Source: Dimorphilus gyrociliatus (taxonomy: Eukaryota; Animalia; Annelida). From it: DNA of 64,000 nt. The position numbers were made by a program, and so were the translations under genes. Location: contig CAJFCJ010000007.1 in NCBI GenBank assembly GCA_904063045.1, positions 802,819-866,818 of the forward strand. Direction: 5' to 3'. This document shows positions 3,001 to 63,127 of this stretch, piece after piece (position 1 is the first letter of the stretch; the number at the start of each line of letters is the position of its first letter). Under the pieces are notes generated by a model, which worked only from the letters and a program-made list of their open reading frames with translations, was not told the DNA's origin and ran no database searches.

Positions 3001-3066
3001 AACTTCTATAATCGATCTTACAGCACTAAGATTTTCCATTCCCAGTGCCGATGAGGAATTGTCCAT
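1..3066 (-). CDS. IPO11: Importin-11 (spliced; runs off the left end of the window)
   Basis: ATG at 3066 (MDNSSS...). Importin-beta N-terminal motif AIIYLKNGIDRYWR, then IAKIARYDIPLRWPELF, RDAVYKSIGLASYQLYDELDFDSWF, RRRIVWMIARW and YLLEDGLELW. The last exon (~1-490) reads ...HERRKMELSQKDPAQ, matching the IPO11 C-terminal ...KDPV region. Confidence 0.92.
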
Positions 3067-3762
3067 TTTAAATTTTTATGATTTATGAATTTTGTCACAG
3101 ATTGAACCGTTTTTGAAATAAAAAAGCAAAGAATTCAAGTATTTTTACCAGATGCCTATGTATAGCTTTCGCCGTGGTGATCGATAATAGAGTTTCTCTT
3201 GCTAAAACACTCAAGTTGTATCATAAAACGTATAATGTGGTTTCCTCGAAAACAATAATGTAATACATAGGGGAAAATTCAATGTAAAAGATGCGGAACC
3301 GGATCCAGTATAGACTGCCCGTATGAAGACTTTCTATTTTATAGTAATTTGTCAATTAAAGTTATAAATTAAAGCACAGATATATATTAAGTTATCCAAA
3401 TCCCAATATAACACACAACTAATATTGAAAAGATATGTTGCAAAAAAAAAATTGACGTTCAAAGAAACTTTCCATTTTTGACATGAAAGTTTAGTACCAG
3501 TTTTACATTGTTAACTGGCTATTTAAGAAAATTATTCAAGAGTATATCTTAAATTTTGTAAGAGGAAATCAACAGTTCAAGATAAAATATATTAATTTAT
3601 TATAGAAAAGAGCTTTTAAATACTAAAAATGTATCAGCAAAAATATAGAAATAACAGAAAATGAGATTCTGAAAATGTAAAAAATAGTTGTAAAAATATA
3701 CTACCATTTCTATAAACAACCCATTACAGAGCACTATATACAGACTATAGCAAAGAGAATAT

Positions 3763-5181
3763 CTATACATGGACACTTGGTCCTTCACTTGTTCTTTCAG
3801 CATAAGAGTATAGGCCACGGGGACTTAGTTCGTTCAAAGCCTGATTATTACTGCTGAATTTACCCAAGTTTTCACGTCTATTCTTAATGGGTGTTTCTTC
3901 AATATAGGAATTATGTACGTCAACACTGGCCGTTCTGGAAGACTGGCTCAGATCTCCATTACTGGGTAGGTCATTGTCATATTCTTTTTTTTCTAATGAA
4001 TTTGAGTAATTGTTTTCATTATTAGAGTTCTTAATTTGCATCTTATAGCAATCAACGAATTCGCTCTCAAATCCTTGATTATCGTGCTTTTCGTAAGGTT
4101 TATTATCAGTAGCAGCCTGACGACGTTGCACATCTTGAGCCGTAAAATATCTGTCTTTTATTACAATTATACCTAGCACCATACAAGCTATACAAGCCAA
4201 ACCAAAGAAGAAACTGAGGGCTATAATAGCTTTTTTATGTTTTGACTTCAGATTAGAAACAGTTGGAGGTTCGTCGAAGCAAGTAGGGTCTGCCCACGAA
4301 CGTTTCCTGAGACAGGTACAAACAGAGTCTTCTTTGTTTCGATTGGAAGTGTCTAAAAGTTTTCGATATAGAAATTACCATCGTTTTTCCTAAAATAGTT
4401 AGATGGGAAAAAAAATGAAAAAACCTACCACAAACAGATACACCAACTTCTTTTGTTTTTCCGCCAATTTCACAAATAAAAATCCCAGAATCTTGGTATT
4501 TTATGTCTGTTTAAAAAGTATAAGGCGAGATATTATTCAATTTGTTCGATTATTCTGTCAATTGTAAAAAGTTACGGTTAATTGCTAAAGTAGATTTAAT
4601 TCCACTTTGTTTAGAGTCACGAGATATCCAGTATCTTTTAGTTTTAATGAAGTCATTTAATTGTACTCCTGTCCCAATTGCTTCTCTAATATCTGCCCGT
4701 TGTCTAAACCAGTTTAAGGAATTTCCCACATCGCTTTGACATTCAAGCGTTACTGAATCACCTAAAATTGAAATATTTAATTAGAATATGAATAATTATG
4801 TATTAAGTATTTAAGGACAAACCTGAATATATTTGATTTTTTGGCGGGTATATTGAAAGAGAAATGGAACCAGAAGAAACCACTAAAAAAGAAGAAAAAA
4901 AAACAATGGAGTAAAAGTTCATCTAATATATTAGACATTGTAATAAATTTACGATCTTTACTATAGAGTAAATAGTAAGAAAGATTTTTAAGGCCTATTA
5001 TATAAGATTTCTAGGTTATCAGTAATAAATTCGATAGCCATCTTGATAACAGATTCGAATCCCTAGTTTAAATCGAACCCCGAAACGGTTAAAGATAATA
5101 AAAAAAGTCCTTACCGAGTGAGAATAAAATCATTAGAAGTCTAGTACCAAAAAAATTCCGTGTTAAATTAATAAAATTCAT
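3763..5181 (-). CDS. Type I membrane protein with one Ig V-set domain, a short Cys-rich linker, a TM helix and a ~130-aa cytoplasmic tail
   Basis: Five exons assembled from GT-AG sites: MNFINL...LMILFSL / VVSSGSISLSIYPPKNQIYS / GDSVTLECQS...LNWFRQ...STLAIN / HIKYQDSGIFICEIGG...VSVC / DTSNRNKEDSVCTCLRKRSWADPTCF...AIIALSFFFGLACIACMVLGIIVI (TM)... The canonical Ig C-W-DSGxxxC pattern is present. Confidence 0.75.
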
Positions 5182-5636
5182 TTTTCACAAAAATCAAGGT
5201 AAGTATATGACTACCTGTCCAAAAACACCATTTTAATAACAAACAGATACTTGTAGATACCTAAATACAAAATGGCGGACTTTCTTTAAAGTCATTATAC
5301 CACCATTTTGAATTGTTCAGCTAAGTCTCACCATAGAAAACTAATAGTAATTTTGACCCTTAGTTGACTCTTTTATATATAGATTCGTTCTGGTCTATCG
5401 AACAATAAGTATTCGATTGTTGGTTATCTGTTGTTTCATTACGCAATGATACATAATAGACAATAATACATATGTGGATTGCAATAATTACTTTGTTTAA
5501 ATAAAAAATACGCTTTATATCATAGAAATTATAAAAAAAGCTTAGAACATTCTTTTTCAAAGAGAAAAAATATGATTACGGCGTAATACTTTCACTTTAA
5601 ATGTTTGGTACATTTGTTTGTCAATATTGATTAAGT

Positions 5637-6663
5637 ATGAAATTTAAGATATATCTTTCGATTAGTATAATTTCAATTTCCTTAAACTCATTCATACTTT
5701 TTTATAAGTGTTATGATAGCTTAAATATAATTAATAATGTTAATGATAAAGCCAGATTTAATTTAGAGAACAATACAATTATTTTTATAGGAGGTTATCA
5801 ACATTCAGGCTCTAATCTACTTAGACTGATTTTATCCTCTCATCCTGAAATATTCTGTTCTCCTTCTTTCAATAAAATTGATAACTTACTTAGATCTTTG
5901 CGTATGCAATTTTATAATAAAATCGAAAGGCAAAGGATACTTGAAGCTAAACTACCAATAAAGGATCTTATATTAGCATATAGTCGTTTATTATATAGTT
6001 TACTCCCCAAAAGGGAAAACCGTATTGTTTGCAGTCAAAGCAAGTTTGTTTTTTCCTGTTTTTTTAATTGTTTCTTATTCTTATTATAATTAAAAGTCTC
6101 TTATTAAATAAAAAAATAGCCCTATTTATATGGATATTTTATATAAACTCTTTCCAAATTCGAAATATTTGTTACTTGTGAGAGATGGAAGAGCAATTAC
6201 GGATTCTATCGTTAAACACTTACGACACTCGTACACCGATTATAGAAAATACGAAGATATTCTGAAAAATTGGAATGAAAAAGTTAGCCATTCTACGTGG
6301 CTATGTATAGAATTAAATAGGATAAAGAATAGTGAAATATGCAAAATAGTGAAATATGAGGATATTATTCTCAATGGAAATGAGACTTTGTCGTCAATCC
6401 TGGCTTTCCTTGGAGTAAAATGGACAAATAATGTTCTAAATCATTCAAAACATTCTACAGATAACTTGTTGAACGGATTACATGGATTGAAAAAGAGACA
6501 ATTATTAGAACCAATAAACTTTAAACATATCTATAAATGGAACAGAAACTGGCCTGAAAAGCTCCACGAAATGTCATTGAGAAAACTCGCCCCTCCTTTA
6601 TATTTATTTAAGTATATAAACTTCTCCGTAAGCCAAGCTATCCGACAAAAAAATATCTTCTGA
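5637..6663 (+). CDS. Protein-tyrosine sulfotransferase-like protein (probably catalytically degenerate)
   Basis: N-terminal signal anchor; IFIGGYQHSGSNLLRLILSSHPEIFC (TPST: [26 protein letters not shown]); LFPNSKYLLLVRDGRA; VKYEDIILN...ILAFLGVKWTNNVLNH. One intron at 6044-6119. Confidence 0.8.
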
Positions 6664-37612: not shown

Positions 37613-40600
37613 TCAGAGTTCTTCATTTGGCGATGGTATGTCGTCTGAACATTCTCGACTTGCCGGCTGTTATTAATGAAAATATATAAACAAATTAATT
37701 TTTTATTAGGTAACTAACTACTTTTACTATCAAAAATATTTTCACTTACGGATTTTGGCGACGGTGACCGTCGGCAGTCTTCCATATCTTCTTCAGGTAA
37801 AATTTGTAACGCGTGTTGAAGTGTCAATTTAGCCGAATTTGAACGTTCTAAAAAGTAACCGTTTGATGTTTCATTCGATTGGGCTGGTGGAGACCAAGCA
37901 TAGGTGTTATGACTCGTGTAAGGTCTTCTTTCTAGTTCCTCGCTTAACCACTCCACTGCATGTTGCCATTTTTTCTTGAAATCGGTGTATCTACACAGTA
38001 TGTCTAATGAACTTTGACACTTATTAAATAGCTGAACCATCATTTTAATAATCTGATAGCCTCGTTTTTGGTAATGGTTTTTAGACTTTTGAATTATATC
38101 AAATAAACCGTCTCTATCATCAGGAACTCCTTTGAATGCTAACATAATTCGCTGCATTTGGAAAGAGTCTTGTATGAATAAAGTGTTCATTATAAGATCC
38201 AGATACGGTCTTAGCTCGTAGGTGTAAGAAAATGCAACTTGCCACACCAATTCCGATAGCAAATAATTTGAAAAACTCTCATTCTCCCACGAACAAAATA
38301 ACAACAATTTTGTAATGTCTTCACTAGATTGACAATCTTCTACAACTTTTTTAATAATGCTTTGTCTTTGATAGAGCATCTCCGATACTTCTGAAGTAAT
38401 TGGATGTATTGGGCCACCTTCATCGGCGTAGGGATTCGGTTTTATATTTGTACTACCATCACTTGTTTTACAGAATGCACTAACATCGTAGCATCTTACC
38501 AATACTGATACAACAGAGTAGAGCTTTCCCAATTCAGTATACTGATACTTAATTGGTGGGCCGGGACCTTCATCAAGAGCAACAGTTATAAACAAGGTTG
38601 GAACTTGATGACGGAGGAGTTGTTCTTTTTCTTCTCTTCCTAATTGAGCGTACATGACGAACAGCTGGAAGTATTGTGCTAAATGTCGTCCATTCTCCGA
38701 AACTTGTCTCTTTAATAAATTCAAAACACTACTTATCAAAAGATCTGAATAGGATAGTGATTTTCCTTCTGTTAGTGGTCGATTACCGTCACTGCGACTA
38801 CAGTGTGCGAGAAAGACAAGAATTCGCATGAATGTTTGTCTAACTTCTCCTGACGGGCACTCCAATAAATACTCAGAAAATCTGCTGGGATGCTGAAGAA
38901 GAACTTGCTCGATAAACCACAATCGAACGTTTTTGGAAGTTCTCAAGTGAAACGCAAAAGCGTCATACCATTCGTGTGCTGAACCTCGAAGACTCTTTTT
39001 TGTTCGGAATCCAACTGTAAACAAAAACTTTGCTGCTAGTTGCACGCTTAACATTGCTAATTCTTCACATTCACTGGTACTCAAATAAGACGGTGAAGGT
39101 GAAATTACGTTGATCTGTACAAGACTACGTATGAAATGAAAATATTCCGGGCAAAACTGAGCTCTCTGATGCATAAACTGCAGGTTATGACGACGAACAG
39201 ATTGTTCAATAAACGATGGCATTATCTCGTTAAGGTTTAAGGTGGCAAGACTTTTCGCGACGGTTTCAACATCGCCTTCGCCTTCAATATTACGATTCTG
39301 ATCTACACGTTCGTATAAAAGAATATACGCGTTCCACCATCGCTTTTGTCTGCGATATGACATTCTTTTTAGCATATGATCGAATACTTCACCAAGATAC
39401 TCTCCTCCAAAGCACTGATTTCTTAGTTCCTCGTCATCCATTCTACATTCTGTTACGTCGCCATCATCAAATTTGTACCACTTTTCAGTACCTCCAGGTA
39501 CTCTATGCAATATATAACTGAAATAATGACCTCCGGACGCTTGTCCAGAATGAACAACCATTCCGACAAGCCTGTATTTAGTACAGGTTTGACTGTTGGC
39601 ATTTTCATCTCCTCCTCCAGCCTCTTCATCGACGACTGCTTCCCCTTCCATTCTAGCTAAACCATGAACTGTGTAGGGTTCCATATCTAGTTGTTGAGGG
39701 AACTCAAAGTAATCATTAAATTTAACTGCACAGTCTCTTTCCCAATCGTAATCAAATCTCTTTAATTGAATGGCTAAAATAGGGGGTAGTTTTTTAATGC
39801 ACATTCGTTTTACGGTGTCTACTTTTTTGTCGCAACGTTCACAGTGATAGGCATTCGCTCCCTCAAGAAGATCACCTTTTACATATTGTTCTAAAGACTC
39901 TAATAAATTGTGTTGGTTTCTTATGTCAATGTTTAAAGTTAAAAAACTTTGAGAACGCGAATATCGATGGGGACAACCTTTACAAATTTTTTGATCAGCA
40001 TACGCTCCACCCATAACTTTTGAAATAATAGGCTGAGCACCAATGGCTTTCATCGCTTCATCAATACTGTCGGCTACGCTTGCCAAAAATTCTAATGCGT
40101 CTTGCTGCTCTCGCAAATTTAAGGGTTCGCCTTGCAATCGGAAATGTTTCCAAAACCTCTTTGGAATATGATATTGCAGATCGGATTTACTCAAGTGGCC
40201 AAAAATATGTTGAATATGGCGTAAAACTCCTAAGTGATAGGTTTTCTGTTGTTCCTCCGGTTTTTCTTCTATTACTTTCGATTGTTGAACATCTTCATCT
40301 TCGTCAAAGTCATCTGGTATATCATCCTCTCCTCCAGCATTCGCTTCTAGTACAGAACGACGGATTGGATCAATCATAAATAACTGCTGCAATACGGAAT
40401 TCATGTAGCATGTAGCTCCCGCATTCTTTAATCCAACAAAACCATTTGCTGGCCTCTTCCCTACTGCAGGTACATACTCCCAGTCTGTTAAAGATGAATC
40501 TTTATCAGCGTAATACATGACTGTCAAAAGCTTTGATAATAGTTCCAAATTTTTTACTGATCCCTCACATAAAGTTACCAATAAGTTAAAGGCTGCCGAA

Positions 40601-43600
40601 GTTGCCATGGGTGAATGGCATACTGCTTTCGTAATTGGTGCTATAATACTTGAATGATCTTTCAATACAGCAACGTATTTTGATGCGGGGAAAATGAAAT
40701 CCTCCACCAATTTGCGTATCAAACGAACTCCGCTACGTGAATCAGCCCCAATTTCCTCTTTCTTATCTTTTTTGTACATTGACAAAAATGAACGAAGAAT
40801 CATAAGATGACCCTGCAATAATACTTGATCAACTTCATCCTGTTCTTTTGTAACTTTGCTTCTGGCGTCCTCTAACCAAGTAATTTCATTCTGAAGTAAA
40901 ACATCGGCATTTGTAAAGTTTATATTCTTTTCTGTCGATTCGTTCAATAACTTGCACAGCAAAACAAAATATTCATGTGACTGATTAGAATATTTCGGAA
41001 CTTGTGATTTCAAGGCCGTAAAAAGAAGAGTAACAAAAAATTGCAAAGGTTTTTGACCTTTCACACATTTTGTAGCGATGTTAAAGAAATAATCTTGAGC
41101 TTGATTACGAATTTCTAATATTGGGCACACCAAAAGAACATCGAGTATAAAAGCTTGCCATTGCTTATCTTTGTTCAAAGATTCTAACGCTTTAGGGCAC
41201 AAGGCTAATACTAAACTCAATAGTTCTAAAGCTTCGCACGAAACCTTCACATCAATATCATTGGGTTCGTATCTACTGGACGCTATTGTTTTTTCCGAAT
41301 CATCGATTGTATGGGATAAGTGCAAAACGCCCCAGCTAGCACACCAAGCAATTTTCTGGACAACTTTTGCAGTGATCAAATCGGGCTGGAAATCTATCAC
41401 TTTCTCTTTTAGCTCTTGACCATGGGAGAGCGTAGCATTATGTAGTTTATTTTCTGGATGAAAGCATGTTACATTCGTAAGAGCTTCTTGTAGAATTCGG
41501 GCTTCCTCATATTCATCGAATTGTTCATTGTTTTGTTGAATATTATTCACTCCATCGTATTTAGAAGACACATACTGTACTCGTGCGTGAGCAACAATCG
41601 TTAGAACAAGCTTACAAATCCGTAAAACGTGCAAGTAAGCCATACGTTTAAGAAAAATATCTGCGTCCTTCATAAAATCATGTCGCGTCAACATGGCTAA
41701 AGACAACTGTACTCCTCCGTTAAGCAAAAAATTTGTACGCATATGAAAAGCATCTTTCCAATTAATATCTTGAGCCGGGAGTAGAAGTGAGTATAAAATA
41801 TTGACATAATATAGAACAGTTGCATGAGAGGAATTATTGAAGAATATCTCATGCAATACTTTACTCATTTTGGCTTTATCAACGGTTTTTTGTGGGCATG
41901 CCTCCTTCAAGATTTTGACTGATTGGTCATGAGCCGGAATTACGAATAGTAGTTGCAAGGCATGATCTCTTAGAGCTTCTTCTCTAAGTTCACAACCTAA
42001 ATCAATTACCTTACATAAAAACAAAGCTCTAACAGGATGCTCAGTTAAGAGAACTCCTGGTAAGCAAGATTCAATCTCTAAACTCGGACCTTCAAAGTGA
42101 TGACTAGTAGACATATGGTGCGGAGGTGATGGTGAACTATCCGAGCTACTCTCAGCGCTCGAAGGATGCCCAGTTATGTTAGTTAATTTTGCAGTAATCG
42201 TCGTTCTATTTTGAATGCATAACTCGCTTATTAATCTTGAATCGTGAATGGCTGGCTCAAGGAGCTCTCCATTATAGCCTAACTCAACTTTTCCACAAGG
42301 ACTGGAAAATTGAGAGCATTTGAATATTCTGCTTGAAATTTTTAATTCAATCGCCCGGCGAAGACTGGCCAAAGTCTCAACATCGTGAGTCCAAATGTCG
42401 AATTCATCTTGACTTTGCGATCGATGCTGAGTGATTGTTCGAACTTTCAACAGGATATTATTACCTCTGGAAGCTCTAAATAATGGAGGCAATGCTCTTT
42501 CCTGAAGATATGTGCTATCGCATTCTTTTATATATTCGCATAATACAATGAGTACTCTCGTCATCTTTTTTAGCTCCTTTCGTAAGGCAATTTCATCTCC
42601 CTCTTCCTTTCTCGTTGACTTTAATAATTTGACAGTTTCTGCTGATGTTTCTAATCTCTGCATACAATCATTCAATAATTCTTGATGTAATTCTAATTGT
42701 TGTGGTTGCAAATTTGGACTTAAATTTGTATATAATTCTTTTAAGAGTGTGATTGCTTTTGAAGCTACTGTTTCCTCAGCATTCATTATCACTCGCCATA
42801 CGTAATCTAAGCCAATCAAATCAACGCTATCCATGACAATGTTCTTCCCCCCGCATTTCAATTTCTTTTCTCTTAAGTTAACCATTTTAAAAAATCTCTC
42901 AAAACATCCCATGCCAAATTCAGTTAATAGTGATGAATCCAATTCGAGAACACAACTAACAAAAAAATGATTCGAAATCTCTGGATCTAGATCTTGCTCA
43001 TCCCCCATTATTTTGGCAAACCATTTGAAACAAGCCTCCCTATCAGATTGGTAAACTGCATTAACCGCTAAACAATTCCAAATTTGCCGAGCTTGTTCCT
43101 CCAAAAGCCAGATTTGTCCCTCTTTTAACAAAAATCTGATAAACCTCAATCTTTCTTGCACCTGTATGTTGTGATCATATCTATTATCTAGTAGTAACAA
43201 CTTAGCATCAGTTCCAAGTGTTTTGTTTTCCACAATAGCTTGGCGAGCTTTGTTTATATAATCCTCTAAGTTATTTGTTACCAAGCCAATAACACTATGC
43301 TGACTTTGAAGTTCGGAAATTATATTCTGTCTATAATAAAGATTCTCAGTTCTTACATTATTGAAATTTTGTTGAGGAGCTTCGCTAAATAGTTGACAGA
43401 TTTCACGGATGTGTTTTAAGGCAGGAATTGCCCAAGAAGGATTTCTCTTAAGCTCGTCAATTAGCGTACTAATCCAATCCAGTTTATGCGTATCTCTGTC
43501 TTGAGAGCACGAAAAGTCGAGAATTTTTATGTGAGCATTCATTGCCGCTTCCATTGTTTCAGTTGGAACGTCTTGAGAATGTGCTAAACTCCAAAGAAGA

Positions 43601-45338
43601 CTTAATACCTTATTGGCCATAACGCCTTCCTTATCATCTTCCGCTAATCGACGGATTAGCTCTAATAACTTTTCACGTTCCTTTTTAGACGCATGAGTCC
43701 AAGAATTTTGAAAACACTCAAACAAATGATCTAGCTGCTCTGCGGAGAAATCCCATGCTAATTTAGCCAAGAGTTCATGAACATTTTTTACTATAGCTTC
43801 ATGCTTTCCAGCCTGAGCCTGCCAAATTCGATCAAGATCTTTTGAGGTTAATGTTTTTTCCTTTATCATAAATCGAATAATTTTTTCTAACTTCTCTACA
43901 TATTGGGGTTGATGTAATGAGTCTCTTAAAACAATATCAAGAACATTGTTTGTATTTATCCATTCCGCCATTTTTTCTGTTGTCAGCCATTCATCAACAT
44001 CAATATGATGTCTAGGTGAGCAATACGTAACGCTGGTTAAAACTTTGTTCACTTCATTTAAGGCGTTCATTTTTCCACTAAATGACGATATTTGTAGCAA
44101 CCTTAAAATCATTTCTAATCGTAGTATTTCTAATTCCTTAATTATTTCTTCTGTTCCCACCGTTCTTCCTGCTAAATTCTTGAGAGCTTTAATGATACCA
44201 GATAAAGTGTCGTTTTTCGCCTCAGTCTTAGATTCCTTTTTAAGATCTTCGTCTGATAAATTTTTGAGAATACCGGGTACAATTTTAATTATCGGGAGAA
44301 AATAATTTTCCACAGTATGAGTCGTTAATAACTCGTAACAATTTCCCCAAGGCCTGATTATAAGTAATAAATGAAAAAATCGTAAAATAGTTTAATTTAG
44401 ATATAGTTACTTGATTAAGGCTGCTATAAGCGATACAGATAAATTACTGCCTTTAGTAAATCGTTCTAAAATAATTTGAAAACCACCCAGGCGTCCAAAT
44501 AAATTTATTAAATCGACAAGCCAACCCTGGAGGGGGAAATTCAAAAATCAGTTATTCATACCTCAACAAAACAGCAATAAAATATTAATTTTATTTACTT
44601 TTGGGATTCTGGTATCATAAGTATTTGCAAAAGCAGCCTCTTCATCGTATTTACTTGAATATTCACATTGCTTAGATTGATTAAAATGATGAAATCTACA
44701 ACATTGACAAATTAGCAAAACAAAACTATTAAAGTGATATGTTTACTTACTTAGACATAGGATTTAAAGCCACAGCTAGTAGATCCAAAAGTGGAAACCA
44801 ATCTTGTGACAATTTTGTTACAATAAGCTCTATCAATTTTTCAGTATTTCGAAAAATGCTTTTCTGAAATAATTAAGAGTATTCCCATGGTAAGTTATAT
44901 CATTGATTGTAGAAAAGCATAAAGGCTAACCTGTATCTCTAATTTCCAGCCACTTACGGCTTCATCCGATAGAATTTTAGTAAAAGAAGTTGTCAATCCA
45001 TCTCGAAAAAAACGTTGACAAGCTTCGCTCCTTGTATCTTTTCCTGTAAATATATATGATGGTAACGTGATCAAACCAGGAAATACAAGCATACCTTCTT
45101 TACATAATTTGATTGCAGCGTTAAGTAATTTTTCTAATTCTCCATCGGGTAATACAGGAACGACCCATCGCGGTCTATTAATCATTTCATCCAATCTATT
45201 CAATATTTCAAGTGGAAAGTCAACCTCATCAAATTCGTCACTCTGTGTTTCTAGTTCATCATGTTGCATGGGAGCTTTTTGATTCTGCATTTTTTCTGGG
45301 GAATCATCATTCTTCTTGTTTCCACTTGCGATTGTCAT
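37613..45338 (-). CDS. USP9X: Ubiquitin carboxyl-terminal hydrolase FAF/USP9X
   Basis: [25 protein letters not shown]-terminus; Cys box [13 protein letters not shown]; His box [11 protein letters not shown]; WYKFDD; C-terminal [20 protein letters not shown]. Six introns; one exon of ~6.6 kb (37750-44354); last exon PASREC...EEL*. Confidence 0.96.
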
Positions 45339-46304: not shown

Positions 46305-49300
46305 ATGGTTTGTTTTCTAATAAAACTAAATGATAAAATTTTTTAAGACCTATGTCTTTCAGACGCCAAAACCGAAATCGAACAAAGCGGAGAGTGTAAA
46401 AGTAGTTGTAAGATGTAGACCTTTAAACAGCAAAGAGGAGAGCCAAGGCCACGTCAGGTTTAGTTTCCTCTAAAATTTCAATTTCAGTGTATAAATAAAC
46501 ATTCGATATTTTTAGAATTGTGGATATGGATGTTAAAAGAGGAGTTATAGATATACGTAATATTGCTGGTGCAAAAAATGAGGCGAAAAAAACTTTTACA
46601 TTTGACTCAGTTTATGATTGGAAGTAAGCGAGGCTTATTTTCGTAAAAAATATTACCGCAGATAATGTTATTAATTATTATAACCAATGTTTTTCAGTTC
46701 AAAACAAAGAGACTTATATGATGAAACCTTCCGCGATTTAGTACAGTCTGTATTAGATGGCTTTAATGGTACAATTTTTGCCTACGGTCAAACTGGCACG
46801 GGGAAAACTTTCACAATGCAGGGTTAATATTAACTTGCCTATTTATTCTTTTAATATTACAATACATCTGTTATTACTTAATATAGGTGTTAAGAACGAT
46901 CCAGAAATGAGAGGAATTATACCAAATTCCTTTGAACATATTTTTCAGCATATTGCTATTTCTGAAAACCAACAATATTTGGTTAGAGCATCGTATCTCG
47001 AAATCTATCAGGTTATATTTAAAACACTTGAAAAGTTTCAGCTTCTAGCCTAAGATTATATTTCTTAATAGGAGGAAATCCGCGACTTATTGGCTAAAGA
47101 TCAAGGTAGACGTTTAGAGTTAAAAGAAAGACCTGATACTGGAGTTTATGTAAAGGTATGATAGCCAAGTTTAACTAATAGTATATATTAAAATTTATTA
47201 ATGCAATTTTACAGGATCTTTCGTCCATCGTTACAAAAGGTGTTAGGGAAATCGAACATATAATGAACGTAGGAGATGCCAACAGGAAAGTTGGGTAATT
47301 ACTTCTACAATTCCATATATATGTATAGTCTAATCAGTGTTGCTATCATAACTTAACATCAGGTCTACAAATATGAATGAGCATAGCTCAAGATCTCATG
47401 CTATTTTCATCATTACCATAGAATGTAGTGAGGTAAGTACCATATTCGATACTTCTAGTATTTTTTCTCGTTTTATTGAAAACAACAATTATTGCAGGAA
47501 GGAGCTGATGGGGAAAATCATATTCGAGTAGGAAAATTAAATTTAGTAGATTTGGCAGGATCCGAGAGACAAGCAAAAACGGGAGCTGAGGGAGAAAGGC
47601 TAAAAGAAGCAACTAAAATAAACTTATCACTGTCCGCTTTGGGAAACGTCATTTGCGCTCTTGTTGATGGAAAAAGTTCCCATATACCCTACAGAGATTC
47701 TAAATTGACTAGATTATTACAAGACTCTCTAGGTGGGAATGCCAAAACAGTCATGGTGGCGAACATTGGTCCTGCTAGCTATAATTATGATGAAAGTGTT
47801 ACTACACTAAGGTAATTTTCTTTTGAAATGTAAATTAAACTAAATCTAAAATAAATATTTTAATATAGATACGCGAACCGAGCTAAAAATATAAAAAATA
47901 AACCTAAGATCAACGAAGATCCGAAGGATGCTTTACTGAGAGAATTTCAAGAGGAAATTGCAAGATTAAAGAAACAGATTGAAGGTAAGGGAGGAGGAGC
48001 AGTTGTATCTGGTAAAAAAAGAAGAAGAAGGAGACGTCGGGGAGGTGATGGTGGTGCCGATGGTGAATTTGAAGATGACGACGACGAAGAAGATGAAAGT
48101 GTTGATCCAGAAAAAGCTGCAGAACTCTACAGACAAGAGCAACAACAAAAATTAGAAGAGGAAAAGCAAGCAATTATGGGTGATCAGTCCATGATAGCAG
48201 AAGTAAGTGAAATCAAAATAGACATTAAACAAAATATTCCTTATATTTAATTATCTAAAAATAGAAAAAACAAAAATTACTTGAAGAACTCAATAATCAA
48301 GAGACAAGATTGAAAAAAGAACAAGAGGCTAAACAAGCCCTTCAAATGAAATTAAAAGTTTGTATCCAGATTTGTTAAGTTTCAATCATATTCTATAGAA
48401 AATTTGATTAGGCTATGGAGAGTAAACTGCTTTGTGGAGACGTTAATATAGTCGACCATACGAAAGAACAACAACGAGCTCTTGAGCAGAAACGAAAAGA
48501 AATTGCTGATCAAAAGGTATTTTTTCACATTTAGCATTATGATTTGTATTATATCAATTTCTAAAATAGAAACAAGAAAGAGAAATGCAACAAAAACTGG
48601 AAGAAAAAGAAGAGACCGCAATTAATTTACAAGAAACTTTCTCGTCGCTGCAACAAGAAGTCGAAGTGAAAACCAAAAAATTGAAAAAAGTAATTGTATT
48701 TCAGACATTTATCAACATTAATGATTACTTAATTTTTTTATCTTAGATATTCGCTAAATTGCAATCAACTAAACAAGAAATTGTAGATCTACAAGAAGAA
48801 CATGCAAGGGAACGGCAAGAACTGGAAAGAACTCAAAACGAACTTACAAGAGATTTAAGAATGAAAATGCTCATAATCGAAAATTTTATTCCCATCGAAG
48901 AAAAACAGAAGATCATGCAACGAGCCATTTTCGATGAAGATGAAGATAGCTGGAGAGTTACACCTTTTGCCGAACCAGGATCAATGGCAAAAAGACCTGC
49001 TTCTGCTGTTGGGAATAGACGACCAATGAGCGATTACGCAAAGACGCAGGCACTAAAAACTGCTAATCCCAGATATAAGGTACAGAATTCTAAACAAAGC
49101 TCTTTAAAAAATCATTAAAATATTTTATTTCTGCTTTGCAGGGAGAAAACATATTACTTGTGGAATTAGATATGCCTACTCGCACTACTCGTGATTATGA
49201 AGGACCAACAGTTGCTCCTAGAGTTCAGGCCGCAATAGATGCTGCTTTAGCATCTGATGGCGATTTAGATATCGATAGGTATGTGGTTTGTTGTTATCAT

Positions 49301-51133: not shown

Positions 51134-53202
51134 ATGGAAACAACTACCTATACTAACGAATGTCTTGTTTTTGAAACTGGTACAACTAAAGTATACGTAT
51201 ATCAATATGATATCCACTCAACTAGCGTTGCTGTAAGGGTTATTCAGATTAGGGAAACCAATACAGATATTGATTTCGATATAAAAGTTACTTTTGGTGA
51301 GGAGAATGGTACTTCTGTGTTGAGAGTAATCGGACCTTGTAATAGAGAACCTTACGGTTCTGCTGTTGCAAGTATGAAAGTATTTTATTGGTGTTTAACA
51401 AAAATATTTAACAAGGCTGAATCAATTTCTTCTACTTCTATTGCCCTTCCATTATATGATTTGAGTAATTAATTAACTTGAAATCAGTTTTCTTTATATA
51501 TACTAATAATTTAGCTATTCTGTAAAGGTTCATCGCTTAAATTAACTCCTGAAATGGAGGCGAGAGTTTATGTAGATTTTATAGGAAATAGGCAAACGCT
51601 CATTAAACAAATACATCTTATTGATACAAGAGGTTTTGAAAGTTTTCGAAACTTTGCACACTATTTACGACAAATGGTTTCTCACTCCTACTGGTATGAT
51701 GATATGAAAAATACACTATTAAAACGTTTAGAAGATGATAAATTTACATCTCGTCATACGTTATCTCGTAGATGTAGTACTTTTAGCGACAATAAGGTAC
51801 ATTTTAATGTATCTTTAGTTTAATTTATTTACATAATGTGTGTTTATTATAGAGTAATCGTACATCTAAGAATACATCTTTAGATTTAGATCCTCCGGTT
51901 ACAGATGATACAGATCGAGAACGCTATAAAACTTGCAACGGTTTACAAATATGCATAACGAAAGGAGAGATATTAGAGCAAACAACAGATGCTATAATAT
52001 ACGGTCAAACAAATCCACCATATTTTGGAAATGGTCTAGCAAAATCAGTTAAAGAAATTCTTAGCGACGATATTTTTAAAACTTATCAAAATCAACTGTC
52101 TATCCTTAAGGTCTACGACCACATTGTCACTACTTTGCCAAACGATGTTCACATAGTTCATTGGGTACTACCTTCAACAGCAATACCAGAAGCTAAAGCG
52201 TCAAAGATTGAAAATTCTTTGGGTGATATACTCCTAGGTATGGATCAACATAACGTCATTTGCGTTTCAATAAGCATCCTAGGTACATACTTATCTTGGT
52301 CATTGGAAGAAAAATATGCGCTAGCTAGATCGATTATATACGTCTTAACTTCCATTAGTCAGCTAAAGAGTCTTAAATATACAATATTGATTGATAATGA
52401 TGGACAAAATGTAGCAATACTTAAGAAAATTTGTCAATTCTGGGCGGAAAAAGGTTTACTTACAAACTGCAATAAAGTTAATCCAAGTGAACAAGATGAG
52501 AGAGAAGAAGTAAATTTGAGAGACAAAATATACGATTCAAATGAACAGATTGTGTCGCTAACGTGCGCCCAATGTTTAGCCCTAAGGGGTGACGGCTCAG
52601 AGCAAATGAAATGCGGTCATTATCTATGCAGGGAATGCTCCAAGTTGTCGCAGTATAATCCTGAGGCTAATTGCAAAGGATCCTACTCGTATCAGCAACC
52701 TCCAGGAACTATGCGCCACTATTTCAATAAAGATATAAATTGCTCAGGATACGAGAATAAAGGAACAATCATTATCGAATATATTTTCCCTGATGGTATA
52801 CAACAAAATTGCCATCCCAACCCCGGGAGAACTTTTGTTGGCTGTAAATACATTACATTCTTACCAAATAATAAAGATGGTTTATTAGCCTTAAAACTAT
52901 ATCAAAAGGCCTGGGAAATAGGAATTTTATTTAAAATTCAGTCAACTTCAAACGACGAAGTGAATTACGTAACTTGGAATATTATTAAACAGAAAACCTC
53001 CCTATACGGTGGCCCTGATAAGTAAGTTTTTAACATAAAAATATTCTAATCCTACTTTGTCTTATTTCATCCTTTTTGATGATCTTTTTTTATCACTCTC
53101 TTTCTCATTCTCTCTCTCTCTCTCTTTTGCAGTTCGGGCTATCCAGATCCATACTATTTAGAGAATATTAAACAAAAATTTGTACAGTTTGTCGATTTGT
53201 GA
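51134..53202 (+). CDS. Macro-macro-RING-Deltex C-terminal (DTX3L-like) E3 ligase, divergent
   Basis: Four exons joined in frame (introns 51465-51527, 51797-51852 and ~53022-53132). Two macro-like units (KVYVYQYDI...VIGP...TSIALP...IKQIHLID; ICITKGEILEQTTDAII...IVHWVLP), RING-like CAQC...CGHYLCREC, and DTC QPPGTM...HPNPG...FLPNNKDG...KTSLYGGPDNSGYPDPYYL. Confidence 0.85.
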
Positions 53203-53464
53203 CCAATTCTATTTTTAGATTAAATATACTCTAACATCTTAATGAATTATTTGAATATGAACTAGTTATTTTTAAATTTTTGGCGGAAATTTCTAAGCCA
53301 ATAAGAACTACTAAATTTTTGAGTGGCGCCACTTGTATGTAGCCACTGAAATTTCTGTCATTTCCATCGAAATTCTCATATATTTCATTGATTAAAATCT
53401 TAATCTGTTCAATTTTTTATACAATCTTTAATATAAGAATTTAGCTTTCAAGTTAAACTATACA

Positions 53465-55272
53465 ATGGACAGGAAAATCGAAAATGATTCCGGTATTACC
53501 GAAACGACCTCAATTTACCGTGAACTGTCTACAACAGATGATGATGGTATGATATGCCCTGAAGTGGAAAATGTTTCATCTATTAATAGAAATAGACCGT
53601 CACCCTTTTAAAAGAGAAATAAATATCACCATTATATCATCTACTTCATTTTATCTCAGAAATTAATTAAATAATTAATTCTTATTCATTTATTCTATTT
53701 TCGTTACTCAACAGACAACGCTGGCTTTTCAGCAGCTGGACGTTTAGTTTTTGCTCAAATCAATTTGCAAGCCCTTACAAACAATATCAAAATTCTTCGT
53801 AATAAATTACAAAAGCCAAATGCAGGTTTCGTAAAAAGAACATAATAATACATTTGTTATGTTTGTTTATTCCATCTTACCTTTGTAGGTATTATTGGTG
53901 TTGTTAAGGCTGGAGCATACGGACACGGATCTGTATATATATCAAAACATTTAAAATTGATTGGTAATCATTGATACTTTACTCCTGAAATCGGATGTTG
54001 AATTGCTATACTATCGTTAGGTGTTGAACGACTCGCTGTTGCAACTGTTCACGAGGGAATTTACCTCAGAAGAAATAATATCTCTGGACCAATTCATGTA
54101 TTTGGCAATCTCTATGAGTCAGAGGCGCTTCCTTGTATTGAACATAATTTGATTCCAACTGCTAACAGTCCGAATGTCATCGAGGCAATAGGTAAAGCCA
54201 GGGATGAACTGAAATCACACCCAGGAAAGTGGTTAAATTTAATCAAACAGGGTAATGATATCGAACCCGGTACAATTAATATCAAGATCGATACGGGAAT
54301 GTCTCGAAATGGTTGTTCACCGAAAGATTTTGCCACTCTATTGAAAATATGCGATGAGTCGAGAGTAAATAATTTTCAATTTACAATTTTTATGAATAGA
54401 TACAATTATATAGAAATGAATTTCGACGTAGGTAAAGATTGATGGGGTTTTCACACATTTTTCCGATTCCTACGCTAATCCTGATTCTGCTAGAAAAGAA
54501 TTGGAAGTTTTTATGAAAGTTGTTAATAAACACAAGTATCTATTAATTTAATATGAAACAATAATAAATACACTATTAATGTTCTTTCATTTCTTTCTTA
54601 GACATAGAAATTTTCATCTTCATTCTTCGAACTCAGGAGCCATATTACATGATATTGGAACTAATTTAGACTTTATTAGACCAGGTATATCCATGTACGG
54701 CCTTTCTTCAGATTCTGATTCTGACATAATAAAACCACTGGGATTTAGGTTTGATTATCAGATATTCAAAGATGTTATAATGTATTCTTTGATGTTTTAG
54801 GCCAATTCTAAGTTTACATGCCCGTCCAAATTTGGTTAAAGTTATGCAGAAGGGAAGATTTGTTGGTTATGGCGGGACCTACGAATGTGAAGAGGGCGAT
54901 GTAATAGCAACTATTTCAATTGGTTATGCAGATGGATATTGGAGGCATCTTAGCAACAACGTTGGAAAGGTGAACCTGAAGTTGTTAAATCAGCTTTGTC
55001 CAGTTGTTGGGCGGGTTTCAATGGACGCAATAACAGTAAAAATACCAAGGGATATCCTATCAGTAACAAAAAGCCATAAGTTTGACGTCACAATAATAAG
55101 TCCTGATTACGACAAAGAAACATCTGCATTGGCTATAGCTGCGAAAGTTAATTCTATATCCTATGAAGTAGCTACAAGGCTTAGTTGTCGAATACCCAGA
55201 TTGTATACAGAATCCAATTCTATAGAGAACATTGTATGGAGCGTTCAGGGCTGCGATCGGGATATTTATTAA
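53465..55272 (+). CDS. alr: PLP-dependent alanine racemase (fold type III, bacterial Alr type), 7 exons
   Basis: GVVKAGAYGHG (PLP Lys at 53906-53908), LAVATVHEG, IKIDTGMSRNG, FTHF, HSSNSG, RPGISMYG, VGYGGTY (catalytic Tyr 54868-54870), IGYADG, VVGRVSMD and ISYEV. Introns: 53547-53714, 53826-53888, 53964-54020, 54365-54431, 54536-54601 and 54749-54800. Confidence 0.95.
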
Positions 55273-56195
55273 TAACATTGTTAACTTTGTCTATTTCAGT
55301 GAATGTTTGAGAATATAGTACATAATCTGCATATATAGTATACAACAATCAATATTCTTTAAAGACCTTTAATGTTATATAAGCGAAAGCGAAAATAGTT
55401 GGGTATTCTGATAATTGATATTCGTTATGCGTTCGGTTTTGTTGTAAGAGATGATGCTTATGATCACGGCTAATTTCAAATCGGTCAACGTTTAAACAGT
55501 CATAATATTTAGACTGCTTTGCTGATAAATTATATCCCTGTAGCGGTTGTAAGATTAGCCACTGCGACTCTTGACTTAGATATAGGCATATATCTAAGGG
55601 AAAGGTATTACAGTTCTCTTCTCCTTTAGAAAGCACTTCTTTAGACTGCTTGCTGTAAATAATAATTTAATAACAACAACAAGCTATCTGGGAAAAAACA
55701 TTTGTGTTATTCTGTGAATTTAGACCAAAATGATGATGCCATTGATACTGTACCTATTAAATTTGATGATTATTACAGTAGTGAGTTAGATTGCAGTGCT
55801 ACTGCAAACATGTTTGCAATCGATGTAATTTTACCTTTCTTAATCAATTTAAATATTATACAACAATAACGGATGATTATAATCTTGTTTATCGCTTTAA
55901 ATCGATAGAGAAAAACGATCCAACATTTTGAATATATAGTTACAATATACTCACATTTTCTTGAAAGTAATATTCAAATTATATAATAATAATGTTATTA
56001 ATTGACAAATTGCGTAATAAAAAAAATAAGGTAGTTTTTTAATTTTATATTATTAATAATAACAATATTCAAACATCTATTATAAAAAAGACATTGTTTG
56101 AATAGTTTTATATTTAAATTGTGAAGAAGAATTTTGTTTGCGGTTAAAGAAATACAAAGGAGAAGGAGGGGAAAAAATGCAATATTTATACAAAA

Positions 56196-57071
56196 TTATA
56201 CAATTATGAAGGGGACGTAAACAGTAATGTGACATTCGTCATTTATCTCGGCACTAATTCTATCCATATCGCTCTTTTTAGGTAAGATATATCTTCTTTT
56301 TAACACTTTATCTCCGTTCTCTGTAAATGCTGTTATCAATAGAGTTTTATCATCGATTATTTCTATGTCAACTTTCGAAGCTTGCCAATAACTTTCAAGA
56401 TTTACTGTAATTTCTAAAGCATAATACTCTTTTTTCTTTTGTTTATTTATCTTTTTCATATAGTAATTCGTATCGTTATTAATCCATTTTTGATTGGGAA
56501 AATGATACAGTATAGGAATGGTCACTTCAAGAATTCCATTGTAATTAATATTCTTAGACATATTGATAGGATCGGCGTATTTTGGTAAATTAACTTTTTG
56601 TACTAATGTTTTCGTTAAATCGCCAATTCTTTTTACAGCTGTCACGACTACCTTGTTTAATATCCTATCTATATTTACTAATACTTCACCTTCTTCGTAT
56701 TCCCTAACATCGAAAAAAGCTTTGAACAAAACCTCTCCGGGAGATTTGCCAATTATCAATGTAGGTTTAGATGAACGTTCGTTATTATTTATTGTTACTC
56801 CTTCTGTTAATCTTGATATTTCTGAACTCCAAAGACGTCTCTGCATTTCTAACTCTTGTTGAATTTCACTAAGAAATTTCTTCTTTTTCATTACTTCGTT
56901 TATCCTAACAGAGTCTCCTTGCTAAAGTGGCCGGTGTAACGTTTCAAAGTTTTCTTTTTAAAAAACATATACACCTATAGGCCAATATTCAGGGGCATTG
57001 ATCCCTTACTACGAATGGAAAGAATAGAGTCTGTGGCTCACAAGTAGGGAAGAAGCAGTATTATATACCAT
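56196..57071 (-). CDS. Small heat-shock-like protein with two alpha-crystallin domains (p40 major-egg-antigen type)
   Basis: FKAFFDVREYEEGEVLV...VNLPKYADP...NGILEVTIP and a second unit VDIEIIDDKTLLITA...KRRYILPKKSDMDRISAEI. The main exon is 56196-56921. A putative ATG-only first exon at 57069-57071 has TATATAAAAG at 57101-57110 upstream (less certain). Confidence 0.7.
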
Positions 57072-58713: not shown

Positions 58714-60186
58714 TTAAAATTCTTCATAAAATGGGAAGTCCGGAGCTTTACCGTCTCTAAATTCTATCTTACCATTCACTTCTACGACGGGTGCAATGTA
58801 TCTATAATTCTTATCGATACTATCAATAATCTTCACATCTTCATCAGATATAGTAAAATCAAAAATCTATTGAAGAATACATTGCTGTTAAACGATCGAA
58901 AGGAAATGTAGCTGAATTGATAACGTACGTTCAGATTCTGCTGAATCCTGGAGGGTGTTACGCTCTTCGGAATAACAGCGATATTTCTTTGTGCCAGCCA
59001 TTTAAGAAGAATCTATCAGCCACAAAAGTTAGTGTTTACCCATAGATTAAAAACTATTGATGTTAGTAACTTACTTGTCCGGGTGTTTTCGAATATTTTT
59101 GACCTAGTTTTTCTATGACAGGGTCCTTAAGTAGAATTGGTTCTTCTCTGGTTCCAGCCCTTGCAATGGATTAATTTGCATAGAGCAACAACATGTTAAT
59201 ACTATAAAAAAAGAAAAATGTTACCATGGCCTGTCTGGTGAACCTAAGGGGCTGTAAGCAGTAACAGTTATCCCATTTTTATGGCAAAAATCCACGAGTT
59301 TTTTTTGACCAAAGTAGGCGTGTATCTCAATCTTGAAATTGAAAAGATTAAATTTCAATAGACAATGTGCTAAACAGAAATATACCTGAAGATTAGCTGG
59401 TTTTATTGAGCAATTATCAAGAATGTTTTGAATTTGTTTGCTATTAAAGTTAGATACTCCAATACTCTTTGTCAAACCTAGTTTAACGCATTCTTCCATT
59501 TGCTTTTAAGAAAGAGAGAAATTTCTATTTTATTAATATTATTTTAATTTTTATTCTTTAACCAAACCTTCCAGGTTTCAAGATGGCAAACTTTATCGTA
59601 TATAAGATTTCCTTCGTCATCTTTGGGAAAATTTTCTCGTCCTTGCTAAATATAGTAACAAAGATACCGGTTATCTACATATTATAAGTTATATTTATTA
59701 CAGTCGAGTTCAAACCTTGAAAGCTGTAGGCCAATGAATCAAGAATAAGTCTAAGTAGTCAACATTTAGATTGGTCAATGATTCTTTTAGAGATGGGATA
59801 ACATCTTCTTTATGATGACGTGTATTCCACAACTATACGTTTTAATACAAAGTTTCAGTTATACATAAATAAACATTACCGTTTTTAAATTATACCTTGC
59901 TTGTAATGAACACTTCCTGCCTCTTAAGACCACTTTGAAATTTTTCTTTTAAAGCTCTACCCACCTCCTCTTCATTACCATAAGCATAAGCGCAATCTAT
60001 AAGTTTATAATTATTGTCGATTGCAGTTTTGACAGCATTTTCTACCTCTCCAGGTTTCGACTAAAATGTATTTGTTTTAAATAAACGATATCAATTAAAT
60101 AGAATAAGTGTTAAAGTTACCTTCCATGTTCCTAGTCCCACTATTGGCATTACTTCACCACTTAACAATTTTAGAGTTTTAGCCAT
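58714..60186 (-). CDS. Aldo-keto reductase family 1 (AKR1A/1B-like)
   Basis: [40 protein letters not shown] (D-Y-K-H tetrad intact), [16 protein letters not shown] and [11 protein letters not shown]. Confidence 0.93.
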
Positions 60187-61462: not shown

Positions 61463-63127
61463 ATGCAACAATCTTTCATCAAATCCTTTATATTTCTATT
61501 TATTCCATCTATATTGTGTATTTCTTGGATTTTTTCTTCATTTCAAGAACCGATTCCACCTACTTCAACAGCATCAAGTTCCAGTTTTATTGTTGAAGGA
61601 AGAACTAGACGAGAAAAGCTAAACTCTTTGTACAAATTATATAATTCTATAAACAAATCCACAACGCTTTCAAAAGGAATAAAGAAGAGAATTCGTTTAG
61701 AGGAAGGAGCTGACGAAGCCGAAGAATTAGGAAAATTAAGAGTTATACATAAGCCCAAGTTTGTTATTATTATGATTATTACTATTACTATTATATTATT
61801 ATTATCCTTCTGTATCTTTCTCACTTATAACCTTAATATTGATATAAAGCGGATTGAAGATATTTGATTATAAAGTAATAGATTAATTAATGAACGAGTA
61901 AAGCTTTTAATTTTTATTTTTAACAGATCTCTAATAACATTACCAAGGGATACAACCATTGTTTCAATGCCAAAAGTAACTGCTGTTTCTCCGAGACCAA
62001 GGAATTTGAGTAAGTAGGCCTACTGTTGAATGAGAATAATATTCGGGATGACTGAGTATATATATTTTACGGGTGTATGGGCACGTTTCCTTTATTTATT
62101 GGGCTATGTAAGTCAAATTTGACGATTGAGCCGTGAAAATAGTGAATGAAAGAAAAGTGGGAAACTGGAAAAGGGCACACAATTCTTGTCATTTTTTACT
62201 TAAGCCTTTTATCTTTAAAAAGGGGGACGGATTATAATTGATCAGACACCTTTAACATGGAAACAATTAGTACAGAAGAAGTTTGCTTCAAGATTGAAGG
62301 GAGGACATTTGAAACTTCAAGGGAAGAAACAAACGGAATCTCGCCGTCAAAGAGTTGCAATCATTATTCCATATCGTAACAGGGACAGTCATTTCCGAGT
62401 ACTGTTACGTTATTTGCACCCTTTATTACAGCGGCAAAATTTAGTAGAATATACAATATATATTGTAGAACAAAAGAACAAATTGCCATTTAATAGGTTA
62501 GTCATAACACTATGAGTAGTGTTTGCCTTTTCATTCATTTACTTTATTCATTATAATAACGAAATATACAACAGAGCTTTACTGATAAACATCGGCTTTG
62601 CCGAAGCAATGAAGATTCATCCATTTGATTGTCTCATCTTTCATGACGTTGACCTCATACCTGAAGACGATAGAAACCTGTATAACTGCGCTGCTCAACC
62701 TAAGCATATGTCTGTGGCTGTGTCATCTTTTGATTATAAACTACCATATACTGACATCTTTGGAGGAGTTGGAGCGGTTTTTTCAAATCAATTTAAAGCT
62801 ATTAACGGAATGTCTAACTGTTTTTTCGGTTGGGGAGGGGAAGATGACGATCTCCGAAATAGACTAACTGAGAAAGCTTATCGTATAGTCAGACCATCAG
62901 AAACAATTGCTCGATATACTATGTTAACACATGACCAACAGTTTCGATCACATGAGAGATTCAAGTTACTATATAGTGGTTTTGAAAGGTTCAGTAAAGA
63001 TGGACTGAATTCTTTGAAATTTAGATTGTTAAAAATATTTAAGCATAAGCTGTTTACAAAGATTGTTGTTGACTTTGACAAGTTAAGTTTTATCAATAGC
63101 ACAGAGGGAACGGCAATTTGCAAATAA
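61463..63127 (+). CDS. GT7 beta-1,4-N-acetylgalactosaminyltransferase (bre-4-like)
   Basis: Signal anchor, then RVAIIIPYRNR, FNRALLINIGF, FHDVD (DxD), LPYTDIFGGV (Ile at the bovine B4GALT1 Tyr289 position, which established work links to UDP-GalNAc use) and GWGGEDDD. Introns 61759-61926, 62010-62222 and 62497-62574. Confidence 0.88.

Follow-up and report, generated by a model that had tools for sequence, protein, structure and literature searches.

Gene structure and genomic context

The window, a 64-kb stretch of DNA from the annelid Dimorphilus gyrociliatus to which all positions refer, carries an alanine racemase (Alr) gene on the forward strand at 53465–55272. Joining the exons by reading frame and splice signals gives a model of seven exons encoding 444 amino acids. 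The coding sequence of 1335 nt, 444 codons and a stop, runs without interruption from the ATG at 53465 to a stop codon ending at 55272. The six introns measure 168, 63, 57, 67, 66 and 52 nt, every one of them with GT..AG borders, and have a GC content of 0.17–0.33 versus 0.38 in the coding sequence. GC content of the window is 31%, with no compositional break at Alr. The published median intron length of D. gyrociliatus is 66 bp, and intron loss has been reported for the species (PMC7854359); the sizes of the Alr introns and the intron losses described below fit this published picture.

Transcript data agree with the model. One public sequencing run from 2017 contains 71% of the sampled words of the region 53300–55500. 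Aligned to positions 52900–56100, the run provides a 2114-nt contig that aligns to 53332–55918 with no mismatches and has six joints, at which exactly the six predicted Alr introns, all GT..AG, are removed. A second contig of the same run comes from the upstream gene and ends at the exon border of that gene, at 53021. Although the record of the run does not list RNA, the absence of introns from its contigs leads us to regard it as a transcriptome. Since the Alr contig skips exactly the six predicted introns, a spliced Alr mRNA exists. The seven exons and six GT-AG introns described in the initial annotation are exact in their coordinates, with the coding sequence open throughout, and the splicing for which it had proposed a check is seen at all six predicted sites.

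The features of the gene, all on the forward strand, are arranged as follows. The untranslated regions are known as far as the transcript contig extends: the 5' UTR (53332–53464) has 133 nt or more, the 3' UTR (55273–55918) 646 nt or more. Exon 1 (coding part 53465–53546) encodes an acidic N-terminal extension that lies outside the Pfam domains and is poorly conserved in alignments, and the N-terminal barrel domain begins in exon 2 (53715–53825); both exons are supported by gene model and transcript. The 168-nt, phase 1, GT-AG intron between them (intron 1, 53547–53714) is absent from the transcript contig and has a position that is not clearly common to other animals. Intron 2 (53826–53888, 63 nt, phase 1) is placed by the transcript and the intron alignment at an ancestral position right before the PLP-lysine motif. 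This motif, VVKAGAYGHG with Lys71 and Tyr75, is encoded by exon 3 (53889–53963). Intron 3 (53964–54020, 57 nt, phase 1) is known only from this lineage, an orthologue on contig L002 from another species being interrupted at the same place. Exon 4 (54021–54364) encodes the barrel core with the motif KIDTGMSRNG (Lys178, Arg185), and is followed by intron 4 (54365–54431, 67 nt, phase 0), six alignment columns away from an intron common to Haliotis, Lineus and Lamellibrachia. Exon 5 (54432–54535), recognised by gene model and residue conservation, carries the THF motif with His213. Intron 5 (54536–54601, 66 nt, phase 2) again has an ancestral position according to transcript and intron alignment, and exon 6 (54602–54748) encodes the NSG and IRPG motifs (Ser250, Arg265, Gly267). 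Intron 6 (54749–54800, 52 nt, phase 2) is known only from this lineage, as judged from the transcript, the L002 orthologue and the intron alignment. Exon 7 (54801–55272) comprises the whole C-terminal domain with the catalytic Tyr311, Arg336, Arg359, Met362, Asp363, Tyr409 and the stop codon.

Domain matches identify the neighbours upstream of Alr as a USP9X-type deubiquitinase (37714–44313, reverse strand), a kinesin motor (47492–47815, forward strand) and a gene with a Deltex C-terminal domain (52135–53025, forward strand). Downstream lie a convergent HSP20-like gene, separate from the Alr gene (56196–56891, reverse strand; weak match to the HSP20 profile, 2.3e-05), an aldo-keto reductase (59221–59499, reverse strand) and a beta-1,4-galactosyltransferase (B4GalT; 62519–63127, forward strand). 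The genes flanking Alr are animal genes, which bears out the view of the initial annotation that the gene sits between animal genes and is unlikely to be contamination. Two further features of the neighbourhood were observed. The USP9X-type deubiquitinase is encoded by a single open reading frame of 6.6 kb, or 2199 amino acids, with ARM_UBP24_USP9X-Y, UCH and DUF3517 matches (37714–44313); such an exon is unusually long for an animal gene, and more USP9X exons seem to lie upstream at approximately 44895–45338. A (CT)n simple repeat occupies 53091–53135, in the last intron of the Deltex-type gene.

The L002 contig comes from an independent run, ERR14224706, on the other species. It has 3411 nt and 29% GC, and its Alr orthologue is interrupted at the places of D. 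gyrociliatus introns 2–6. Downstream of the orthologue, on the opposite strand (2958–3410 of that contig), is a gene 57% identical to the HSP20-like neighbour at 56196–56891, and the proteins of the two species are about 60% identical over the last Alr exon. The interruptions and the HSP20-like neighbour mean that gene structure and local order are conserved between the two species. The HSP20-like gene is divergent in sequence and stands tail to tail with Alr in both.

Domains, active site and substrate specificity

In searches with the individual exons, Pfam domain Ala_racemase_N (PF01168) matches exon 4 (2.4e-17) and exon 6 (1.4e-05), and Ala_racemase_C (PF00842) matches exon 7 (4.4e-31). 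All three matches exceed the gathering scores and follow the order of a barrel domain and a C-terminal beta domain. Exon 3 aligns without gaps to residues 34–52 of the Geobacillus enzyme (PDB 1bd0/1sft), placing Lys71 on residue 39, and exon 7 aligns to PDB 3s46 (2.8e-21) with Tyr311 of the VGYG motif on Tyr263. We take Lys39 of the Geobacillus enzyme to be the PLP-binding catalytic lysine and Tyr265' to be the second catalytic base; the residues that bind the cofactor or line the entry are presumably Tyr43, Lys129, Arg136, His166, Ser204, Arg219, Arg290', Arg309', Met312', Asp313' and Tyr354. Alanine racemases act by two-base proton transfer on the PLP-alanine aldimine, with the lysine and the tyrosine contributed by different subunits of the dimer.

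Residue conservation was scored across 228 aligned sequences of the family, all of them near full length. The D. gyrociliatus protein has the family-majority residue at all 16 checked columns (K71, Y75, K178, R185, H213, S250, R265, G267, Y311, Y315, R336, R359, M362, D363, Y409 and R421), including every cofactor and entry column. The catalytic columns are close to invariant: the Lys71 column is lysine in 228 of the 228 members, and the columns of Tyr75 and Tyr311 are each tyrosine in 227. Judged by these alignments, every residue needed for the two-base mechanism is present, and the intact motif set previously noted, with its catalytic lysine in VVKAGAYGHG and tyrosine in VGYG, stands against the 1bd0/1sft and 3s46 structures and in invariant or nearly invariant columns.

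The substrate is a separate question, as the fold could have been kept while the main substrate became serine or a range of amino acids, or the protein took on another PLP-dependent job, with D-alanine not the product. Profile scores from NCBIfam give this reading some room. On exon 7 the alr profile (TIGR00492) is best at 1e-29 and VanT-G next at 4.5e-27, close behind, whereas on exon 4 the two score about equally, VanT-G at 1.7e-10 and alr at 1.8e-09. With exons scanned singly, TIGR00492 reaches 103.6 bits on exon 7 and 37 on exon 4, against an equivalog cut-off of 168 that applies to whole proteins. The only PDB match to exon 4 is the VanT-type serine racemase 4ecl. Because the single-exon scores fail to separate Alr from VanT-type serine racemases, the assignment of specificity rests on conserved residues and homology. 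VanT has asparagine at the position equivalent to Tyr354. In the 228-member alignment this column is tyrosine in 206 members and asparagine in three, and the D. gyrociliatus protein, with Y409, does not have the VanT-type replacement; it also retains the entry residues R336, R359, M362 and D363. The best PDB matches of exons 3 and 7 are structures annotated as Alr, and the purified crustacean and mollusc enzymes have been reported as alanine racemases (PMC7700177, table 4). A shift of substrate in the D. gyrociliatus enzyme is thus improbable, if the least so of the readings that compete with an alanine racemase of the worm's own. Specificity may nevertheless drift within the family: the Tyr354-equivalent entry residue is replaced in Lineus P0154, Lamellibrachia P0198 and transcript P0007 (by S, P and S, respectively), and on these sequences the substrate range may differ among animal Alr paralogues.

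Relatives in other organisms

Exon 7 was searched against 1.84 billion representative proteins, giving 9342 matches, the best of which are eukaryotic and not bacterial. Among them are an exon-sized ORF of 141 amino acids from a genomic contig of another species (62% identity), proteins of 404–428 amino acids from Haliotis, Lineus, Eriocheir, Meganyctiphanes and Batillaria, and sequences from the choanoflagellates Salpingoeca punica and Codosiga hollandica and the jakobid Andalucia godoyi. A protein-atlas search with the same exon matched only generic bacterial clusters of the C-terminal domain. The best matches to the full spliced model are P0151, from run ERR6349723 (46% identity), P0007 (40%), the Lineus protein (41%) and that of Haliotis (41%). 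In this comparison, identity to D. gyrociliatus Alr is 40–47% for animal sequences and 30–36% for bacterial ones.

A wider search with a profile of eleven eukaryotic Alr sequences matched further molluscs, namely Patella ('alanine racemase'), Mya ('ALR-like protein'), Mercenaria, Mactra, Pomacea, Physella, Gigantopelta, Candidula, Potamilus, Sinanodonta and Dreissena, as well as Scylla and the annelids Lamellibrachia satsuma ('Alanine racemase, partial') and Paralvinella palmiformis. Among bacteria, Thermaceae (Marinithermus, Oceanithermus and Meiothermus) provide the best matches to the profile, one of which sits in an ordinary bacterial gene neighbourhood. Among the matches listed there are none from cnidarians, sponges or deuterostomes, and likewise none from vertebrates, insects or nematodes. 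D. gyrociliatus Alr is a further member of a family already annotated in many invertebrates, annelids included.

The family appears in more than one copy in some genomes. Lineus longissimus has two Alr genes in tandem (1–452 and 2001–6487 of its locus, L004), one of them an additional copy whose 447-aa product extends past the start of the locus, and two copies on one contig are also found in Mactra (loci 000446 and 000447) and Mercenaria. Going by these sequences, Alr has undergone local duplication in several spiralians. The 355-aa model of Paralvinella palmiformis (P0195; 3001–10467 of L008) is without the KxDTGMxR and THF region, which falls inside a 4.3-kb 'intron'; exons were probably missed in this annotation.

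Phylogeny

We built a quick tree of 104 sequences and a careful maximum-likelihood tree of 69 sequences under LG+C20+F+G4, and the two agree. The trees are unrooted, and support is given as ultrafast bootstrap/SH-aLRT. Eleven sequences deviate in amino-acid composition from the whole alignment, ten of them bacterial or unnamed. Several members of the animal clade are unnamed transcript-like contigs, which we assume to be animal because of where they fall in the tree.

The 35 animal sequences form one clade (100/96), which the choanoflagellates join as sister group (37 sequences, 99/96). The next larger clade unites all eukaryotes with one metagenome protein (39 sequences, 96/84), and eukaryotes and Thermaceae-like bacteria are separated from the other bacteria with full support (48 sequences, 100/100). 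Within the animals, crustaceans (3 sequences, 100/100), molluscs (19 sequences, 100/99) and molluscs plus nemertean (21 sequences, 99/96) are recovered. D. gyrociliatus Alr falls in a clade with Paralvinella, Lamellibrachia and unnamed transcripts (11 sequences, 99/87). On this alignment, the Alr gene tree follows the animal phyla. Three sequences of 308–542 amino acids, P0176, P0153 and P0199, form a tight subclade within the annelid group; their sources are a Logan contig, an IMG metagenome and a EukProt transcriptome (GHVO prefix), and two of the three have N-terminal extensions of about 100 amino acids.

Intron positions

Intron positions were compared with the loci of Haliotis asinina (L001), Eriocheir sinensis (L003), Lineus longissimus (L004), Paralvinella (L008) and Lamellibrachia (L009); at each locus we used the exon chain whose translation reproduces the annotated protein without deviation, in Lineus that of isoform X1. 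Two of the six D. gyrociliatus introns have counterparts. Intron 2 (column 71, phase 1) shares column and phase with Haliotis, Eriocheir, Lineus and Paralvinella, the partial Lamellibrachia model stopping short of this point, and intron 5 (column 265, phase 2) does so with all five. At the columns of the other four introns (34, 96, 228 and 322) the compared animals have none. Conversely, introns common to the compared animals at columns 125, 222, 304 and 385 are absent from D. gyrociliatus Alr. The alignment indicates that the D. gyrociliatus lineage remodelled the gene, yet that two of its introns are older than the divergence of annelids, molluscs, nemerteans and crustaceans.

Origin of the gene

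In our judgement the locus very probably represents the animal alanine racemase, as the orthologue native to this worm: a fold-type III enzyme that depends on PLP and whose gene is expressed, old and not an acquisition of this animal. A bdelloid rotifer carrying a transferred Alr, to which 31% GC and introns of roughly 60 nt had at first pointed, was rejected as the source because relatives and tree place the gene among annelids. A competing reading has a bacterial gene enter this annelid lineage recently by horizontal transfer and gain its introns afterwards, as described for bdelloid rotifers. It starts from the facts that Alr is characteristic of bacteria and missing in vertebrates, and that a transfer of Alr into the rotifer Adineta vaga is cited in a survey of D-amino-acid enzymes (PMC5169069). 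This reading is highly improbable here. D. gyrociliatus Alr groups with other annelids in an animal clade that branches by phyla, its identity to bacterial enzymes is below that to animal ones, two of its introns are common to four other animals, and its composition is that of the host. Unlike in transfers of the bdelloid type, its nearest relatives are from annelids, molluscs, nemerteans and crustaceans, not from bacteria. Even less credible is a contaminant or assembly artefact, bacterial or protist sequence misjoined to animal DNA: we found no evidence that supports it, and six spliceosomal introns of a size typical of this genome, a spliced transcript 100% identical to the window, continuity with animal genes on both sides and the recurrence of the Alr/HSP20-like pair on an independent contig of another species all speak against it. 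Tree, shared introns, spliced transcript and synteny are the reasons for which we exclude both recent transfer and contamination.

The sequence comparisons favour old vertical inheritance with losses over recent transfer, because the animal clade is supported, the choanoflagellates are its sister group and two introns are common to four other animals. On this reading the gene descends from one that the last shared ancestor of annelids, molluscs, nemerteans and crustaceans already possessed, together with at least two of the present introns, and that probably goes back to the ancestor which animals share with choanoflagellates. The single observation that places the gene in the ancestry of all animals is the choanoflagellate sister group. 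Since the nearest sampled bacteria are Thermaceae (Deinococcota), a placement valid for a sampling in which the bacterial sequences were chosen by similarity to eukaryotic queries, any bacterial origin would be very old; both the direction and the date of such an ancient transfer are inferred.

We lean slightly towards a scenario in which one old Alr, derived from or shared with Thermaceae-like bacteria, was present in the ancestor of animals and choanoflagellates, or in an earlier eukaryote as the jakobid Andalucia may suggest. The introns would have been acquired before the protostomes diverged, many losses would have followed, and the patchy occurrence of free D-alanine in marine invertebrates would reflect differential loss and not repeated transfers. 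The searched literature yielded no paper that sets out this scenario with intron evidence. The initial annotation spoke of a 'domesticated' gene, 'anciently transferred or patchily retained', and proposed a phylogeny and a comparison of intron positions. The single animal clade (100/96) with its choanoflagellate sister (99/96) and the two introns matching Haliotis, Eriocheir, Lineus and Paralvinella uphold the ancient and patchy part of that description; a special event in this animal finds no place, the gene being the orthologue of a family annotated in many invertebrates.

Comparison with known alanine racemases

A bacterial-type Alr has been known from an animal since the kuruma prawn cDNA of 2009, as cited in PMC12414876 and PMC12259925. 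In the searched literature we found no paper that links alanine racemase with Dimorphilus, and no statement of animal-Alr monophyly, of a choanoflagellate sister group or of introns shared across phyla. The prawn enzyme, from Marsupenaeus japonicus, was reportedly cloned and characterised by Yoshikawa, Okada and Abe (2009, J Biochem 145:249). Going by the crab and krill orthologues, this cloned enzyme presumably belongs to the animal clade described here.

The animal enzymes that carry the RefSeq name 'alanine racemase-like' (Haliotis, Lineus, Eriocheir, Mercenaria and Patella, among others) have the same two-domain architecture of fold-type III and 404–447 amino acids. D. gyrociliatus Alr shares their clade (100/96) and two intron positions; it is 34–41% identical over the full length to named members and at most 47% identical to unnamed transcripts of the annelid clade. 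It differs from them in having four of its six introns at positions of its own, in lacking four introns that the others share and in its acidic, unconserved N-terminal extension. Its nearest named relatives are Alr of Lamellibrachia satsuma and LSH36_79g03022 of Paralvinella palmiformis (joint clade 99/87). These two retain the ancestral introns at columns 125, 304 and 385, which D. gyrociliatus lost, and their genes span 3.7 kb and 7.5 kb, compared with 1.8 kb in D. gyrociliatus.

Bacterial Alr (Thermaceae; structures 3s46, 5irp and 1sft) has the same domains, catalytic lysine and tyrosine and PLP-binding residues. The bacterial genes are intronless, lie in bacterial neighbourhoods, encode about 356–390 amino acids and serve cell-wall synthesis, whereas animal Alr is extended at its N terminus and carries an insert in a variable region of the barrel domain. 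The Adineta vaga gene (Flot et al. 2013, as cited in PMC5169069) is likewise a bacterial-type Alr in an animal nuclear genome; it is described there as a lineage-specific transfer, while D. gyrociliatus Alr is an orthologue across phyla. That survey (PMC5169069) treats horizontal transfer of D-amino-acid enzymes. Since many invertebrate genomes contain annotated members of the family, and the cloning and characterisation of one of these enzymes dates from 2009, the discovery is a modest one. Animal-Alr monophyly and the shared introns are a modest addition, which argues for patchy retention over repeated transfer.

Proposed function and implications

Translated from an mRNA of at least 2.1 kb, the predicted 444-aa protein retains both catalytic bases, Lys71 in the barrel and Tyr311 in the C-terminal domain, along with the residues expected to hold PLP and line the substrate entry. 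It would form the usual head-to-tail dimer and interconvert L- and D-alanine in the cytosol. Conserved residues and homology suggest that D. gyrociliatus makes D-alanine, and likewise point to a putative active enzyme, its probable alanine specificity and a presumptive physiological role. Both D-alanine and Alr activity have been documented for bivalves, crustaceans and gastropods (PMC12259925, PMC7700177, PMC10918092), where D-alanine serves as an osmolyte (PMC12259925, PMC7700177, PMC6047364, PMC4950565); in polychaetes, too, D-alanine has been detected (PMC10918092). The likely purpose of the enzyme would be to maintain a pool of free D-alanine that acts as an osmolyte or as an anaerobic end product, as in crustaceans and bivalves, and by analogy an osmolyte role may apply to this worm.

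With this gene, possible D-alanine synthesis in D. gyrociliatus, a miniature annelid whose genome is compact and tractable, has a molecular basis. For the family, the implication is that the bacterial-looking racemases of invertebrates need not be recent transfers. With a gene tree that mirrors the phyla, and two introns common to four of them, the case advises caution in screens for horizontal transfer that flag genes by their bacterial best-known homologues.
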